A stretch of 63,026 nucleotides of DNA, filler included, from Reticulomyxa filosa (Eukaryota; Protista; Foraminifera): NCBI GenBank assembly GCA_000512085.1. It is 14 parts of 14 records of this genome, joined end to end, with 100 filler letters (N's around TTAATTAATTAA, not from the genome) between each part and the next. Parts side by side here need not be neighbours in the genome. Positions count along the whole stretch, not along the records: positions 1 to 8,525 come from ASPP01027181.1; 13 more parts are not named here. One strand, given 5' to 3'. The notes beneath the pieces were generated by a model that saw only the letters and a program-made list of their open reading frames with translations, did no database searches and was not told where the DNA came from. This document shows positions 1-8,525 of the stretch, in pieces (the first letter of the stretch is position 1; the number at the start of each line of letters is the position of its first letter). Both the position numbers and the translations under genes were made by a program.

Positions 1-3000
1 TTTTTGTGGTGGGATGCGGTGCGAATAAATACAACACACGCACACACGAAGCATCCATGGCACTGAGACAATTTGAAATATGTCTATTTTGTTCATTCAT
101 TTATTTATTTTAATATAGTTTATTCCGGCTCCTCGCGAGGGAGACATAGTTGAAGTAAAATGGCGCAATCAACAAAATCCAGATCAAGTGCGAGTGCTGA
201 AAGTCATACCTATCCCTTGGGACACTCATGAAAATGGAGATAAAAACACAAAAAAGGAGACGGACGCAAAACCTAATCAAGCAAAAGACAAACCGAGCGC
301 TGGCAGTGACAAGAAACAGAGCATCAATCATTTCAAGGAATGTGTGTTTGTTGTGGTGAGAGAGAGATAGAGAGAAAGAAAATGAAAAAGGAGAACAAAA
401 GTAAAATGTTAATGACAATAATATGACTTTATCGTTTTTATTATTATTATTATTATTACTCTTGTTTTGATAGTGTTTCCTTTTCTGTTCTCTTTCTCTT
501 GCTTTCTTATTATTGCACACAACATTTGTACATGACCCACGAAAATTGGCCTGACAGAAATGGAAATCAATTGAAGTGGAAATTGAATATATGACTGGCA
601 ATGAAAATCCAGATGCGCCAGATGTTGATACCCTTGATTTTCATCCCGCCATTCAAAATCAATATATTTTGTCTTGGAGAGTAATAGAAACTATGCCACC
701 CCATTTGGTCAATCCGGATAGTTATAACTTGATCATGGCTGATCATTGTTTGATTTGTTATACTCCTTTCAAAGAGTTTGGCTATCAAACTATTTCTTGT
801 TGTGGCCACGACAATATTTGTGCCAAGTGTGCCTTGCGTGAGCGTTGGTTTGCCGAAAACAAAAATAGCCCGATCGTGTGTCCTCTCTGCAAGGTATGCA
901 GTATAAAGAGAGATCTAGACATAAACAAACTTGTTTATATATATATACATATATATTATTTTGAAATTATTCCACTAAATACAGGAACCTTGGGAAACCA
1001 TTGCCTTTGTTAGAGCAGGGTCAGCAGTAACGTGGGATACAATATTCGATCATCCTGTAGAATTTGATTCGGAGATCGATGTATTTTTTGAAGATTTGCA
1101 GACCTTATGGCACTTTTCACATATTCGCAGTTTCCATTGTCCAGTCTGTGATAACCGTGCCAAACACTCAGATTACTCAAAGCGCTATGGCACTGCAAAG
1201 AAGTTGCTCCAACACATGCGTGAATCACATGAAAGCCAAGTATTGTGTGGTGTGTGTCTGCAACATGCTCATCTCTTTATTGGCGAACAACGAATATTCA
1301 ATATCCGAGAATTGAAGGATCACATGAAATATGGATCCCCTGCGCGTGATGGCTTTCCAAAAACAGAGCCACACAGTTGGTGCAGTATGTGTTCTAAACA
1401 ATACTACAACAAAGAATACTTGCATCTTCATTGTCAGAAAGACCATTTCTCCTGTCATTGGTGCCAAAATAGTGGACATGTCGAATTCTTTAAAACACGA
1501 GAAATTTTGGTTTGTAACTTGTCTTCAATGTTTTATTACATGCACGTACATATGCACATATACACATATATATATGTATATGTGTGTACGTTGATATGGA
1601 CATGCAATGGGTTTATGGACAATATACAGGAGGAGCATTTCCGATCTGATCATCAACTCTGTGAACATCCTCAATGCTTAAATGCACGAGACTTTGTCGT
1701 GTTTAACGATCCTTTGAGTCTACAGCAACATCAAGAAAGTTTTCATGGCATAAAATATGCAACAACTCAAGCTAAAAAGCAAGCAATGCAAATCAAGACA
1801 AGCTTTCGTTATGGTGATGAAGAGAGGCAAAGAGATCGAGCAGACGTATTGATTATTCCTCTGGAAAACGATATGCGTAATCGTACAGAAGAAGAGGCAC
1901 ATCGCTTGCAATCCAAGTGGAAAAAGGAATTTGATGAAATTCATCGTCGATACTTTAGCAATCACGGCAACTTTGATCATCGCCTGCAAGAACATCAAGC
2001 CCACAAAAGGATGGGCTTACGACACATTCCTGATGCTTGTTCAAAATCACAATTTCAACAGTTGAGCTCTATCTATCTGTCATCACAGTACCTATGTATA
2101 TTATATATAATAATAATATGTGTGCATTTGAATCGTCCTTCTTCGAAATTGTAATAAATAAATTGCTTGTTGTTTGTTTTGAACAAAACCAAAGACGTAA
2201 TATAGATGTAATGATGCGGATTCAAAAGATTTTGGTCACTGATAAAAAACTTCAAATATTCCAACAGATATCAGAGCAATTTGACAAAAAGCGCATGAGA
2301 GCAAGTGATTTCTTCTTGCAATTTAAGTCGTTGTTCAGTCCACTATGTGAAGAAGATGTGTGGGTGGATGTAATGATGCAAATGCTGTCGCTATTGACAG
2401 ACCATGTATTGCGTCGACAGCTATATTCGGAATACAAAACGTGGAAATTGACAGGCCGTACCACTGCCCAATTGCATTCGACACCACAACAAGCAGAGGC
2501 ATGGAAAGCCCCTTCAAATGCACAGCCGACAGCTGCGTCAATTGTTGCCGGAAAAGCTCGTCGCGTGAGAGGCCACGGCACTGCGGCTTATAACTATCCA
2601 TCAGCGAGACAATCAGCTAATGTGCCATCCCTTCCTTTGTCCACAATGACTACACAATTAGATTCCACACAAGAGCCAGTCATTGCAGCACCACAACAAC
2701 TGCAAGGCGCCTGGGCTCGTGGAACACCAGTTATGCAAGTAAAAAAGGCTGTAAAACCAAATTCACGTCCAAAAGTTCAAAAGGTTCAAGCCAGTGCCAA
2801 GCCAAAAGAGGCTATTCCAATGGATCCTAAAAATCCGCTTTTCGACAAATATTGGCCTGCGTTGGACAAACCACCACCATTGCCAGTATTAGCAACATTT
2901 TGTCACTCGCATATATCTTATTTTGTTCTTTTTTATGTCGACGAAACGTTTGACAACAAGAGTAAATTTTCTTTTTTTTTTTTTTTAGACAGTAGAAAAA

Positions 3001-4313
3001 ATTGAATTTTCGAGTGACTCTGAAGAAGAAGACAAAAAAAAAAAGAAAAACCGAAAAGAAGCAAATAAGAAAAAAAAAGCAGAAAAAAGAGATGACAACG
3101 AAAAAAAGCAAAGCGAAAATGTCCCAAAAAATCAAAAAGAGAAAAACGAAAAAAAAAATAAGCCACAACCACCCAAGACGTCAGAAGCAACAAAAACAAG
3201 CTCACCTTTAAAGGTAATTGAATATATTTGATTGACGTTTTAGTTGTGTTTAGGTATCTTTTTTATTGATCAACCAAAAGAAAAAAAAACGTGAACAACT
3301 AACAAAGGGGTTAATGCCGCACGAAAAAGCAAGAGGCAAATTTTCCAAAGAAAATCCATGGGGCGCAGGTGCAAAGCCACAAGGACCAGCTCCAATTCAC
3401 GTTGATGACCTACCAACGACTGAGAGTGGGAACAATCAACCGGCAGTGAAAGAAAAACAAGAAGAAAAAAAAAAAGAAAAAGCGCAAGAAAACAGACCTC
3501 GAAATTTGAAACAGCAAAGCGCGCCTTTGCAAGAATTGATGAATGCTTCAAAGAGTATTGATAGCAAAAATGCAGAATTGTTACGCAAATTGGAATCATA
3601 TGAAGAAGAAATCGAAGAAATGGACCGTTCCAAAGTATTTGCATTTTTGTTATATCTGTTCCAATGCTGTGTCAAATCATTGCAAGATAAGTGCGGAACA
3701 GGCGAGATTATGAAACAACTCTTTACCGAGTATATGCTCTCACCTTCATTTCGTAATCACATCCACCATGTCATTCAGACACATTTCGTGTCAAGTCCAC
3801 AGTTCCACAAAGATATGCCCATTTACGCTTGTTTTGGTACTCAAGTATTTGCTGTTGAAATTTTAAAATCCTTGCCAAAATGGAGTGAAGCCACTGCTGT
3901 CGCAATCAACGGACTTTTGTCATTAATTACTGACGTGCGACTAGAACAGATCGAAGAGTTCCGAGAATGGATTGATCAAACTATTCAAATGCTATCAAAA
4001 GAGGAGTTGTATGGTTTATCTCTTTACTTATGGTTTGTTTTGGAGACACAAATTCCAATTAAAGGATCGACAAACCGCAATGAAAGCAAAAGTAATGAAA
4101 TTTACACTCAACCTCCAACCCAGCACAAAAATGAAAACAAAAAAGTACCTGAGCAAGCAGCACCGAGCAAAAAGCCCCCTAAAGCACAAAGCGGGAGTTT
4201 TGTGTCCACATACATTTTAAATTTTAAAAATATTTTGCTCTATTTATATTCTATTCATTACAGAAAAGAATAAAAAGAAACGGAATGTCGTTTTGTTCCA
4301 TGTTGGGCTATGA
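1..4313 (+). CDS. ZNF598: ZNF598/Hel2-like RING E3 ubiquitin ligase (ribosome quality control); multi-exon, 5'-partial
   Basis: RING (CLIC...CCGHDNICAKC...CPLCK) is followed by the C2H2 array typical of Hel2/ZNF598 (HSWCSMC..HLHCQKDHFSCHWC; EEHFRSDHQLCEHPQC..FVVF). The last exon, 4264-4313, reads KNKKKRNVVLFHVGL*, resembling the Hel2 C-terminal basic-hydrophobic motif. GT-AG introns join the ORFs. Confidence 0.88.
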
Positions 4314-6475
4314 TCAAAGAAATGTCTAAATGTTTATCATGGGGTGCACATGAATTTTATTGTCTTTAAAAAAGATTTTTAAAAATCGAAGATAAGTTGA
4401 ATTCACTAAAAAATAAATAAACAACTTTGAGGCAAAGTTTGTTGATCAAAAACTATATTCTTTCGACACTTTGGCAGTATCTCATTATTTCCTGTTTCTT
4501 TGGTAGTAAACACAACATTACGCCTAAAATTAATAGAATCATAGCAGAATAATTCTGCTAACTATCCTTTTCACTGTGAATAAAGAATATTTTACCTGTC
4601 TTTCAAAAATATTTTTGAAAATGACAACAAACTTTTTGTGTTTATCGTTCTGCCAAATTGAACACAAGTTAAAAATTTAAGTTTTGAAAACATCAATTCT
4701 ACAAAAACTTGAAACAAAGATCCACACGTTGCACTTGCATTGTAGCCATCTGTATTCATCAAAAAAAAAACAAAACTTTTCACCAGTCCGAAATTTCGCA
4801 CTAAAAAACAAAATTGTAAGAATTTCAGACAACGAAATTACTTCGTTTTTTCTCGTCAAAAGGTATCAGTGGCAAGAAGACTAAAAAAATGTTATCATCA
4901 GTAAACAACAAAAGCAAACATGAAAACAAACCTGAAGCTTGAAAAACTTACAAGCAATAAAAACCTGTTAAAACTATCATTCATTATTTGAATCTGAAAA
5001 AAGGAAAACTAAGTTACTGAACTTCGGTACTGTACTCTTTTTTAAGTTCAGCTCGTACTTGGAGTCGAAATTGAGCGTAGCTGTGAATTTTGAAAAAAGT
5101 TAAATTACTTATCGTGCAAGTTTTTGAATTTTATATCATCGTTTCAATTTGTGCAAAGTATATTAATAAAAAAAATATTTCGAATTTCAATTGTAAATCA
5201 ATTATCTTTCAAAAATGTGACAAAAAGAAAAATCTTAGTTCATTTGTTTTATTTTTGAATATATATAATGTTTGTCTTTTGAGAACAAAACACAAGTTTG
5301 AGGTGTGTCAAGTTAGAAGATAAAAAAAATTGCAAATTACGTTCATTTATAATAATATGTTTTTCACACATACGTACACAAGCATAACATATCCTAAAAT
5401 TAAAACATAATTATTACAACTGTTTTTTTGTTTTAAAAGAGAAAGTGTGAAACATATGTTTTTGAAGCTGCGAAAGTATAAGTTTGAAATGGGAAAATAT
5501 TGAAAACAAATTTCATTAATTAGCTAAAAGGGGGAGCAACAAAAGTGAACGTGGTAAACAAGAAGTAGTAACACTTTTTTTACTAGTTTGTTGTCTCTTC
5601 ATTTCTTCATTCATTTGGAGGTATAAATAACAAAATGTTTGCCGTTGTTTCAGTTGAATCTGACAATCAAATGATTTGGTCAATGTTTTTTTTTTTGTTC
5701 GGATTTGAAAAATAAGACATATTTGTATTATATAAAAACATCGTTGCATGAATAAGTGGACATAATGAAAAGAAAGATCAAGAGATTACTAATTATTAAT
5801 GATTGGTAAGCTCGCAGGTTCTTTGATCAAGGTTGTTCAAGTGATTGAATCGGCAAAATTGTTCCCAAGAAACATGGCAAACGTTTTTTAAGTATGCCAA
5901 CAAATGTAAGTTCATGTCTGTGTTGATGTTCAAACAAAAGAAAAAAAATCGCTTTTTGTGAATCCGAAAAAATATTTTTATGATTAAAAATGTTACATAT
6001 AATGGTAGCTTACGCTACGAACTTATGCTCCAATGAGGATCGCATAAAAAAAAAAGTGGAGTTGTTCAGGCAGTGAAATAAAGAAAAAGATGTTGCTGAT
6101 AGTAGAAATTCCAAGTACAAGTGCATTCTTTGTGATATTATCTTATGTTGATTTTTTAATTTGAATGACAATTTTTTTTTCAATGTTTAATAGCTGGGGT
6201 CAAGTCGAATCAACAAGTTATTTCGGAGTTTTGGCAATTGATGTGAAAACCTGGAAAAAAGTTGGTGCAAGTTGATAATGAAATGCTAGTTGTTTTTCTC
6301 CGAACAGAAAATCTGATTTTTGTTTAATAATATTTACTGGTATCTTGCATTGCTTAGTCCAAGATAATGTTGCGATGCATGATTGCAAAATTAAATAAAA
6401 CAGATTTACCAGTAACTCCAATATTTATGATAATGTCGCTACGAATGATAATAATTTTAAATAAATTTAAATCGA

Positions 6476-6799
6476 AGTGACTTAACTTATGGGTAAATCT
6501 ACACCGAAAGAGTTGCATGTTGGGTCAGACATGCAAAGGCATGCACTGTTATAGACTCCAGTGGGGTACTTGATTGGTTCATGATGCAGACATGCATATT
6601 GTGTTGTATCAGGTGGCTACGACCAGGGTGTTGTAGTTTCTACGCATTGTTACAATATAACATACACTTGATATGGCCACAAATCTCTTGGCACATGGTT
6701 TGCTCTAATATAGACTTTAGCTGGGGCCATGTGTTGTAAAGTTTGCAACATGCAAAGTCTTTCAACGCTGTGAAATGGGTTCGAGTCCCGCCGTCTCCT
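6476..6799 (+). ncRNA. Degenerate tRNA-like element with a ~250-nt structured insert (tmRNA-like or long-intron tRNA architecture)
   Basis: T-arm/B-box GGGTTCGAGTCCC at 6777-6789 and acceptor strand CGTCTCC at 6792-6798. A-box/D-arm-like TAACTTATGGGTAAATC at 6483-6499. Long-range helix 6501-6522 with 6746-6771, several G:U-rich hairpins, and T-runs downstream. Confidence 0.45.
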
Positions 6800-7177
6800 A
6801 TTTATCATTTTATTTTTTATCTAAATATATTTAAATTTAATTTGCTTGTGTGTTTTTGATATATTGTAGTATTGATATTTTCAATATCGTAGAGTTGTGG
6901 TCAATTGATAACTTATTGCAAGTGAATGGAAAGATTGGCAAGACAAGATTCAAAAATGTCTATTTGAGTTTGATAAAAATATTGAAATGCAGGTACAATA
7001 TGGCACGATCACTCAAGCCGCTATGTTTTTTTGTAAAAGCGTAACGATTTATATAAGTATAGAGCCAAAGTTCTTGCAAATCATTTTGAGATCAACTAAA
7101 AAAAAAACAAACAATAGAACGGGAACGGCATTAAAAATTTGTCGCCTGATACTTTAAAGGACAAAATGCACGTTAAA

Positions 7178-8448
7178 TTACCAAAAAGCAAGCAACAACA
7201 AAGAAAAGTCAAATATAACGAACAAAAGATGATTTATTTTGCCCTTACCGGAAGAGTGTGATGTAACGGTCCATATACTTTTACTGTTTTCATTATATGT
7301 AGCTACGCTGTTTGGTGGAATTGTGATATTTTCAATGAATCCATTAAACAAGATAACGGGTGTGTTGTCAGTATCATCAATGATAAAAAAATAAAAAGGA
7401 AAGTCCGCCTTAAATAATATGGGCGTATTTGTTGTGTACGAACTACCAGCCATAACAACCACAGTGACAGCAGCCGCTGTAAAGCCATTTTCTGTCACAT
7501 CCAACGCGGTGTCATGATAGATTTCACTTATGAAGATCGGCGCGGAGGTCATTTCGCTAAAGTTCGCTTTGCTAGAATCAAATGCATCATGCATTCCTAA
7601 ATTTTTCAATGAATCGGTTAGCTTGTACTTATCTTTGTTTATTTTTTATTTTGGTTCATTTAAACGACCATTAGTATGTACCTTTTTTTTCTTTTTTTTT
7701 TTCTGAAACCATAGGCAGAATAATAAAAGATAACTGCTAATGGAAAATTTGGGCACAGCCGAAAGCGACTCGAGTGTACTCCAACTATGTTAATGCATTT
7801 TTGACCACGTCATTGTCAATTTCGGTTTGACATGTGGAACACTTGAGCAGGGCGAGAAACACGAACAAGTTATTTGTGTTTGTACTGCGCAGCTTGACAA
7901 ATTGGAAATAACGGTTTTCATAGTAGTCAAAGTGGCCAATCTGATGCATCAAATGGATTTCAGTTTTCACATTTGTGCGCGATTCATCCGATAAAATGGG
8001 TTTTTGCTTGTCATACTTTCCGAAAATTGTTGAGACCAAAGACCATTTATGTATAATGTATTCACAAGTATCATCACATCTGATTCGCTTATTTGTGGTA
8101 GAGCTTTATGGAACCATTCCCTTTTTTTTTTTTTTAAAGTAAGTTTTTTTTATATACCTTTTCCCCTTCGTTTTTTTTTTTTTTGTATGTATAGCCTGTA
8201 GTTTACCATCAGTTTGATTTTCAATCCAATTGTTAATCAATTGCAAACTGCCATTGGCCTGCAAGTCCAGCATATAAAAATTATCTTGGCCCACTGCAGA
8301 TACGTATGACGATTTTACTTGCGCTTCAAATTCGTTGTCTAACCATATACGGTTGGCCACTTTGACTAGTGGCTTTGTTGAATTGCTCTTACTACTCACA
8401 ACCGAACCGTCGTACCGAGACATCAAGGCTTTTCCGTTGTTGTGAATC
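7178..8448 (-). CDS. Serpin (serine protease inhibitor family) with hydrophobic C-terminal extension; 5'-partial, multi-exon
   Basis: VANRIW...INNWIENQTDGKL; LGMHDAFDSSKANFSEM; hinge ENGFTAAAVT; C-terminal signature FKADFPFYFFI...ILFNG. Confidence 0.92.
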
Positions 8449-8525
8449 CTGCATTTATACAAATGAACCAAAAGAGAAAAAGGACAAAGCAAAAAACATT
8501 AGAATGATACATTTTCAATTTTCAC

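Follow-up and report, generated by a model that had tools for sequence, protein, structure and literature searches.

Transfer RNA (tRNA)-like modules occur in longer RNAs such as the mascRNA of MALAT1 and the bacterial YrlA Y-RNA-like RNAs, where the tRNA-like fold is a structural or processing module of a transcript that is not a tRNA. In bacterial transfer-messenger RNA (tmRNA, SsrA) the 5' and 3' ends of the molecule form the acceptor stem and T arm, with a long helix in place of the anticodon arm and a short linker before the T arm, and outside bacteria and organelles we know of no RNA with this topology, which is familiar to us only from tmRNA. tRNA-derived short interspersed nuclear elements (SINEs) carry their tRNA as a 5' head, and in precursor tRNAs it is typical for the intron to pair with the anticodon. 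tRNA genes with non-canonical or long introns have been described in Archaea and among the nuclear genes of Cyanidioschyzon merolae (PMC3728597; reviewed in PMC4090602). Here we describe an element that shares features with each of these systems, at positions 6476-6799 on the + strand of a 63,026-nucleotide stretch (filler included) of the Reticulomyxa filosa assembly GCA_000512085.1; the whole of this stretch is called the window below. The element is a member of a family of dispersed loci, denoted family 1, whose tRNA-like part is built from both ends of the RNA around a long insert, whereas that of mascRNA and YrlA is a contiguous local module.

The family exists, its + strand fold is conserved with compensatory changes, and its insert is as constrained as its tRNA-like parts. 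On balance, we regard it as probably a set of structured RNA genes of ~325 nt, low in copy number and not described before, that derive from a Glu-type tRNA and whose product would be a stable RNA of RNA polymerase III (Pol III) type. A DNA search of the window's own assembly (102 Mb in 50,809 contigs) found the element in at least 22 places at 71-86% identity, further copies were obtained with two divergent copies as query, and a profile search of all fetched loci gave 12 full-length and ~13 partial copies, many of them cut by contig ends. An earlier note on this DNA, which had called for a search of the source genome, had suggested among other readings that this was a decayed member of some Pol III RNA or SINE-like family not yet described; the element is not single-copy, and the family evidence backs that suggestion. 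Lineage A comprises locus L002 and partial copies at 92-97% identity, lineage B comprises L005, L006 and partial copies at 90-95% identity, and a further set, group C, consists of L009, L014, L047, L048 and L049. Identity among older copies goes down to ~60-70%, and the window copy shares 83% identity with L002.

Considered alone, the window copy folds only weakly better than chance. Its + strand has a minimum free energy of -96.8 kcal/mol (z -1.46, 8 of 100 shuffles being as low) and its - strand gives z +0.14, so that the proposed comparison with shuffled controls came out in the expected direction on the + strand, but with this copy barely beyond chance. In L002 the + strand reaches -145.2 kcal/mol (z -5.22, 0 of 100 shuffles; - strand z -2.29), and its minimum-energy fold holds a perfect 7-bp acceptor stem, in which all seven pairs form with G3.U70 included, a T arm of 5 bp and an 18-bp helix between the two ends of the insert. 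Ordinary intergenic DNA with a T-loop-like motif and inverted repeats that resembles a structured RNA by chance would fit the low z-score of the window and the fact that ARAGORN and Rfam report nothing there, but at least 22 homologous loci, the covariation described below and the score of the intact relative already refute it, and it retains practically no probability. It is the family, with its matches across the genome, together with the covariation, that makes the feature more than chance.

Covariation was counted on the alignment of the 12 full-length copies with a 92-pair model written by the author. Cells are paired in 81.2% of cases, compared with 33-45% when partners are slid by 1-3 columns, and the covariation score of the model is 0.211 against 0.07-0.10 for the slid versions. 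Changes on both sides of a pair are found in 64 cells, against 36.3+-4.9 in shuffles, none of 500 of which reach this number; the compensatory changes among copies that the earlier note had sought are therefore present. The count of pairs with a double change, 31, was reached by 13 of 500 shuffles. RNAalifold independently recovered two of the domains of the insert, H6 and H7, with compensations.

Some of these changes are recent, being found among young copies, i.e. lineage A copies that differ from L002 by 3-8%. One compensation lies within a single copy, L004, where position 222 has changed from U to C and its H7 partner 259 from A to G. Two others are put together across contigs: an A to G change at acceptor position 5 in 5'-half copies is matched by U to C at 322 in the 3'-half copy L004, and C to U at H6 position 137 in L015 is matched by G to A at 199 in L004. 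Young copies also show C to U at 28, 30 and 31, and those at 30 and 31 keep helix Y, described below, as G.U pairs. Per site, young copies have more differences in their exon-like parts than in the insert. Over the family as a whole, mean pairwise identity is 72% in the insert core, 71% in the tRNA-like 5' part and 63% in the 3' part, and falls to 47-48% in the two strands of the closing helix H2, which nevertheless retain their pairing. A structural RNA is marked by just this combination of conserved loops with a helix that is hypervariable but paired, and since the insert is as constrained as the tRNA-like parts while H2 is variable yet paired, the insert is no freely drifting intron. The patterns of change thus indicate that the fold is under selection, that this selection is recent and that it includes the insert.

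The anatomy of the element is given for the window copy in Table 1. All of the strings quoted in the earlier note, from AGTGACT at 6476-6482 and the D-arm-like segment at 6483-6499 to the T runs, were checked in the sequence and are present where it had placed them. Within the tRNA-like ends, the acceptor helix has four pairs with double-sided changes across copies and the T stem has three of its five pairs changed on both sides, whereas the stem of the D-arm-like hairpin is 100% paired and invariant across the 12 copies; this is the most conserved tRNA-like segment, and it is also present in a sister family, family 2. Helix Y (CACCG with CNGUG) keeps four or five of its five pairs in 10 of the 12 copies. 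The 5' strand of H2 is the most variable segment of all (47% mean identity), yet it is 75% paired, 10 of its 17 pairs having changed on both sides, and in the window 6513-6522 and 6746-6755 form a perfect 10-bp pairing. T runs are found shortly downstream of all 12 full-length copies.

The insert itself contains a 25-nt internal direct repeat (window 6542-6566 and 6701-6725), whose two copies, modules 1 and 2, each form a short hairpin and then a run of G, the 8-nt loop being the same in both. The loop motif in intact copies is UAGAGACG, and the same two substitutions have occurred in both of the window's copies of it. In hairpin H5 of L002 one C and one G have been lost, and it is these two that pair together in the other copies. 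Double-sided changes affect five pairs of H6, lineages A and B differing for instance by CG to UA and AU to GC, and the inner hairpin of this domain (6615-6638) is 93% paired; H7 has six such pairs, three consecutive ones of which differ between lineages A and B. The pairing of the 5' domain (window 6523-6577) is uncertain, as a helix scan over all column pairs is too noisy in an RNA so rich in G and U.

Several of the helices that had been drawn from the window sequence by itself are recognisable in this family-wide fold, namely the hairpins 6544-6548/6559-6563, 6616-6623/6630-6637 and 6690-6701/6724-6735. The 10-bp helix proposed at 6600-6609/6655-6664 is not the conserved pairing; it competes with that of H6, which the window keeps almost fully and for which covariation backs 6602-6614/6666-6678. 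The H-type pseudoknot proposed between 6711-6719 and 6737-6745 has nine of nine pairs in the window and three to five of nine in L002, L005 and L006, and is thus not a conserved feature either. It can form in the window because mutations have opened the base of the conserved helix H7, where counting by hand from the sequence finds three mismatches among the outer four pairs.

This opening, together with damage to the acceptor and T stems, belongs to a wider pattern in which intactness falls with GC content. The window copy keeps 76 of the 92 model pairs, compared with 87 in L002, 84 in L005 and 82 in L006, and has a GC content of 44% where L002 has 54% and the flanking DNA ~30%. The locus at window 6476-6799 is a mutationally decayed copy, a pseudogene.

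Family 2 was found by a generic T-loop-anchored pattern and a D-arm motif search, and comprises at least 20 loci of 300-318 nt with the same tRNA-like clamp. Its 5' 30 nt, insert junction included, resemble those of family 1 (~80% identity, an estimate by eye), and the linker, T arm and acceptor strand at its 3' end are the same as in family 1. Its insert cannot be aligned with that of family 1, and likewise pairs with the triplet region, which here reads AAU or ACU and is followed by G at position 37. Subtype 2b has a wholly different but complementary acceptor stem. In an RNAalifold prediction from 12 copies, 31 of the 85 pairs show compensations and the covariation term is -3.12. Directly after the tRNA-like 3' end come 7-15 A, and the motif CGGAGTCGGACTAT is conserved ~110 nt upstream. 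Because the D-arm motif search of the assembly returned families 1 and 2 only, the clamp appears to be a recurring design of one element superfamily and not something general among the tRNA genes of this genome, which makes it less probable that the triplet works as an anticodon. A possible third family of ~395 nt, seen at L166 (C34230), L167 (C33266) and L165 (C32968), ends in a T arm and an acceptor-like strand after tandem G-rich repeats of ~22 nt.

If family 1 is indeed a set of RNA genes, the + strand RNA of its intact members would be clamped at both ends by an acceptor stem, a D-arm-like hairpin and a T arm, with helix Y and the long, variable H2 standing in for the anticodon arm. H2 would form by pairing of the two ends of the 257-nt insert, with the old anticodon within its base, and the insert core would fold into conserved domains, two of which bear the same 8-nt hairpin loop. 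Transcription by Pol III could start from the split A box/B box and an upstream TATA-like element and terminate at the T runs, after which the ends would be trimmed by RNase P and RNase Z and CCA added. The whole RNA would then persist as a stable scaffold RNA with a tRNA-like domain, and not as a mere tRNA precursor, the clamp supplying the promoter, end-processing signals and stability for the conserved insert. The loci would have spread by DNA-level duplication, with most copies decaying.

A number of points weigh against this proposal. The transcript, its ends and its polymerase are all inferred. The A and B boxes lie ~290 bp apart, far beyond the usual spacing in tRNA genes, and the A box is a partial match only. 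Subfamilies, decayed and truncated copies and the A-rich tail of family 2 would also fit a mobile element, and no conventional tRNA-Glu was found by the patterns used, which leaves room for an intron. L002 was used in part to draw up the 92-pair model, whose pairing score is inflated as a result, and related copies can exceed shuffles without selection; both of these caveats are addressed by the slid-partner control and the recent compensations among young copies. Finally, no homologue outside this genome was available for testing deeper conservation.

The family descends from a Glu-type tRNA. The intron reading holds that the loci are split tRNA-Glu genes, in which a giant non-canonical intron of 257 nt is excised from L002-type copies to yield tRNA-Glu(UUC), or tRNA-Glu with CUC in group C; the intron may have its own function, and the window copy would be a pseudogene either way. 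ARAGORN, run with long introns at its default threshold, called L002 1-327 as a 70-nt tRNA-Glu(UUC) with a 257-nt intron at 31/32 or 32/33, the one family 1 copy accepted as tRNA-Glu, and this call lends support to the Glu-like reading offered in the earlier note. The complete CUUUCAC loop lies in the 3' part of this locus, and the first bases of the insert pair with U33-C36, just as introns typically pair with the anticodon in pre-tRNAs; as in described genes with long or non-canonical introns, the tRNA body is broken near the anticodon. The triplet is UUC or CUC, both of them Glu, in 11 of the 12 copies, four copies in group C reading CUC, and in the alignment the 5' strand of H2 has changed to match in L047 and L049. 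Lineage A includes several near-identical copies, and these, with the apparent acceptor compensation at 5/322 across partial copies on different contigs, are further points in favour of this reading.

Other sources of this tRNA were sought in the assembly. The pattern for the tRNA-Glu(UUC) loop and T-loop had 75 matches, among which a tRNA-like 3' half was found only in L002, L004 and the bacterial-type C30679, i.e. family copies and one bacterial contaminant. None of 23 other UUC-pattern matches is a tRNA by ARAGORN, three of these giving the same result with Rfam, and the tRNA-Glu(CUC) pattern had one implausible match in the assembly. A T-arm/acceptor pattern for the parental tRNA, allowing 3 mismatches, returned only family copies, a few Ser tRNAs and contaminants. 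The tRNA census behind this argument is incomplete, however, since the RF00005 search scored 63 of 4123 candidates and the assembly is fragmented (50,809 contigs); those scored were mostly bacterial-type tRNAs, for example Ile(GAT)-Ala(TGC) pairs 76-77 nt long.

The comparison across copies speaks against the split-gene reading. ARAGORN made no long-intron call at the default threshold on the window or 10 other copies, and relaxed thresholds gave inconsistent parses. A canonical anticodon stem, with four of five pairs, exists in L002 only, the other 11 copies having between none and three. It is the competing helix Y that is conserved. Its formation leaves a linker of 2-3 nt before the T arm and turns the old anticodon loop into a bulge at the base of H2, which is the tmRNA-like layout that the earlier note had described. 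Lineage B, although young and well kept, retains UUC but has A at position 33. Unlike the introns of described tRNA genes, the insert of family 1 is highly structured, covaries and is as conserved as the exons, and in young copies it is the exon-like parts that change faster. It also lies at a non-canonical position, 31/32 or 32/33 and not 37/38, and thus 5' of the whole anticodon loop, and inspection showed no bulge-helix-bulge at the insert, the 3' junction lying within an unbroken helix, four pairs away from a 3x3 internal loop. The AAU followed by G37 in family 2 would be implausible in a tRNA reading A-starting codons. We therefore consider it decidedly unlikely that these are split tRNA-Glu genes; the ancestry is that of a Glu-type tRNA, and the thing conserved is not a cloverleaf. 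A group I intron was considered separately and rejected, the insert being preceded by C or A and ending in C, with no match in Rfam.

The likeness to tmRNA, pointed out in the earlier note, extends to the arrangement of acceptor stem and T arm, the long closing helix in place of the anticodon arm, the 2-3 nt linker before the T arm and a similar length. Two further features might suggest that the loci are a tmRNA relic or even a working eukaryotic tmRNA analogue, with an alanine-chargeable tRNA-like domain and a short tag frame ending in tandem stops. G3.U70 is present in L002 and its close relatives (lineage A), the U being retained in the 3'-half copy L004, and a frame of 10 codons that opens with GCC-ACA runs to a conserved UAA-UAG in the hairpin of the second module, the few changes in its last two Leu codons all being synonymous. 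This codon argument is post hoc and concerns very few events, and the frame is one strand of H7, where compensatory changes alter residues non-conservatively, so we read it as non-coding. It lies in a helix near the 3' end and lacks a PK1-like context, whereas the frame of tmRNA follows the first pseudoknot. G3.U70, moreover, is confined to lineage A, being absent in the window copy and in lineages B and C, and the pseudoknot is not conserved.

With default settings, ARAGORN made no call on either the window or the family copies, with one spurious permuted tmRNA call, on L010, at a relaxed threshold, and Rfam cmscan found nothing at the element in the window (E up to 10) or in the three best copies (E up to 5), even though, as a positive control, ARAGORN found a genuine bacterial tmRNA on contaminant contig C5503 of the same assembly. 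No gene for SmpB (PF01668) was found in this fragmented assembly, the best match having E 0.89 and 15.5 bits, where 10 of 14 control genomes were positive. Family 1 also differs from tmRNA in having a real D-arm hairpin and in being nuclear and multi-copy, with ~25 diverged copies and a sister family in AT-rich eukaryotic DNA. A transferred tmRNA relic, as the earlier note had it, finds no bacterial, archaeal or viral relative in a scan with the conserved motif, so that of the tmRNA likeness it is the topology that stands, and a tmRNA origin or function is highly improbable. Somewhat broader is the idea that intact copies make a stable, CCA-tailed and aminoacylated tRNA-like RNA that acts in translation, either as a nuclear tmRNA analogue, given the G3.U70 of lineage A, the 10-codon frame and the tandem stops, or as the sole supply of tRNA-Glu in this organism, released from a structured intron of 257 nt at a site cut by no known eukaryotic splicing endonuclease; we rate this as a long shot.

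As for the bacterial sequences in the assembly, contaminant contigs (L072 on C5503, L135 on C30679, L086-L101 and others) carry a genuine tmRNA, whose tag is ANDEKFALAA, together with a tRNA-Glu of enterobacterial type and several of the Ile(GAT)-Ala(TGC) pairs that bacterial rRNA operons typically contain.

How the copies spread can be judged from their flanks. Between distant copies, alignable flank extends no more than ~30 bp beyond the RNA, whereas within lineages it runs to hundreds of bp. Group C shares flanks from about -85 to +100, with a TATA-like box at -58 to -45, a conserved A-rich motif at -30 to -8 and two conserved blocks downstream up to +100; these flanks may be promoter and terminator, or part of a larger duplicated unit. 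Lineage A copies share ~1 kb upstream that corresponds to the dispersed repeat next to the window copy (Table 1), and the L002-type copies have an extra repeat of 565 bp, with a short direct repeat at its bounds, inserted between this one and the RNA, 7 bp upstream of the latter. Family 1 shows neither an A tail nor target-site duplications, and together with the co-duplicated flanks this makes it more likely that a small gene was duplicated as DNA along with its promoter, though retroposition may account for older events or for family 2.

A SINE-like non-autonomous mobile element made from a split tRNA, whose fold is kept for Pol III transcription and for recognition by a partner reverse transcriptase, is the other explanation that has to be considered. 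Its subfamilies would be successive master copies and the window copy a dead insertion. Like tRNA-derived SINEs, the loci have tRNA ancestry and a B box, perfect in the window and in L002 (the A box, ~290 bp away, matches at ~8 of 11 positions by inspection), and occur as diverged copies in young and old subfamilies, dispersed in intergenic DNA beside unrelated genes. Some are 5'-truncated (L016, L018, L021) and two have internal deletions, the D-arm region being fused directly to the second loop module in L022 (C19925) and the first module to the 3' strand of H6 in L065 (C6962). The A-rich tail of SINEs is shared by family 2 only, which ends in 7-15 A; family 1, besides lacking such a tail and target-site duplications, has a low copy number (~25), and its homology runs into co-duplicated flanks, which fits DNA-level duplication better than retroposition of a Pol III transcript. 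In the flanks examined no reverse transcriptase or other transposon protein was found, only host genes (SF3a60, kinesin) or nothing recognisable, and a tRNA split by the body of the element, in place of a 5' head, is not a known SINE layout. A mobile element of this kind therefore seems unlikely, and we prefer small RNA genes that have been duplicated as DNA.

Relatives beyond this genome were sought with a pattern of 20 specified bases from the most conserved insert motif, and metagenome, prokaryotic-genome and viral contigs gave chance-length matches only (L066/L184, L067 and L183), without flanking similarity. A literature search on the presumed organism group (tRNA, intron, SINE, repeat) found no description of such elements. 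If expressed, family 1 would represent a new class of eukaryotic RNA, in which both ends of a 325-nt molecule come together as a tRNA fold that encloses a conserved, covarying insert, and the sharing of the clamp by two related families, ~45 loci together, shows that this is no one-off accident. The loci bear on the distance over which Pol III A and B boxes can work, on the recruitment of tRNA-like modules into other RNAs and on protist tRNA genes with introns beyond the known splicing rules, and for annotation they are a case missed both by ARAGORN at default settings and by Rfam.

Table 1. Features of the window copy, its neighbours in the window, and the loci of family 2 (positions refer to the window unless locus handles are given).
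Feature	Position	Strand	Remarks
Acceptor stem, 5' strand	6476-6482	+	Decayed; 4/7 pairs with 6792-6798
U8-A9 and D-arm-like hairpin (3-bp stem, GG in loop), partial A box	6483-6498	+	
Helix Y, 5' strand CACCG	6502-6506	+	Partner 6768-6772
Long closing helix H2, 5' strand	6507-6522	+	Start of insert; pairs with anticodon relic and insert end
Module 1, short hairpin with 8-nt loop motif UAUAGACU then UGGGG	6542-6566	+	
Hairpin H5	6578-6596	+	81% paired across copies
Branched domain H6	6602-6678	+	Outer helix 6602-6614/6666-6678; inner G.U-rich hairpin 6615-6638
Domain H7	6685-6740	+	15-bp helix 6685-6699/6726-6740 around module 2 (6701-6725)
Closing helix H2, 3' strand	6746-6762	+	
Anticodon-loop relic CTTTCAA	6759-6765	+	CUUUCAC in L002; UUC = Glu
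Helix Y, 3' strand CTGTG	6768-6772	+	
T arm with perfect B box GGTTCGAGTCC	6775-6791	+	Stem 4/5 pairs in window
Acceptor 3' strand (6792-6798) and discriminator	6792-6799	+	CCA not encoded
T runs TTTT, TTTTTT	6800-6826	+	Candidate Pol III terminator; flank AT-rich
Dispersed non-coding repeat, outside the RNA	5381-6471	+	At least 12 loci, 68-92% identity; positive GC skew
ZNF598/Hel2-like gene, several exons	576-4273	+	RING, C2H2 and ZNF598 PAH domains
Serpin gene, at least 2 exons	7178-8492	-	Ends ~380 bp downstream of RNA element
Family 2 loci	L156-L164, L174-L182		Contigs C3713, C10646 (three copies), C21356, C22182, C26034, C27852, C46874
Family 2 contigs, continued			C27434, C1046, C2691, C21488, C25573, C25876, C25944, C26556, C44508, C45223, C47445

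The window copy sits between the ZNF598-like gene and the serpin gene. The former, which the earlier note had recognised, is a real gene, and its nearness to the element is coincidental, as that note had allowed, because other copies adjoin unrelated genes. Two minor observations were made elsewhere in the window. A palindromic (TG/TA)-type microsatellite at 1535-1607, in the ZNF598-like region, gives spurious sub-threshold matches to mir-297, mir-3149 and mir-1277, and on the - strand of the intergenic DNA at 4819-4906 there is a weak, sub-threshold match of C/D box snoRNA-like character (snR107/snR61 type, 25 bits, E 0.24).

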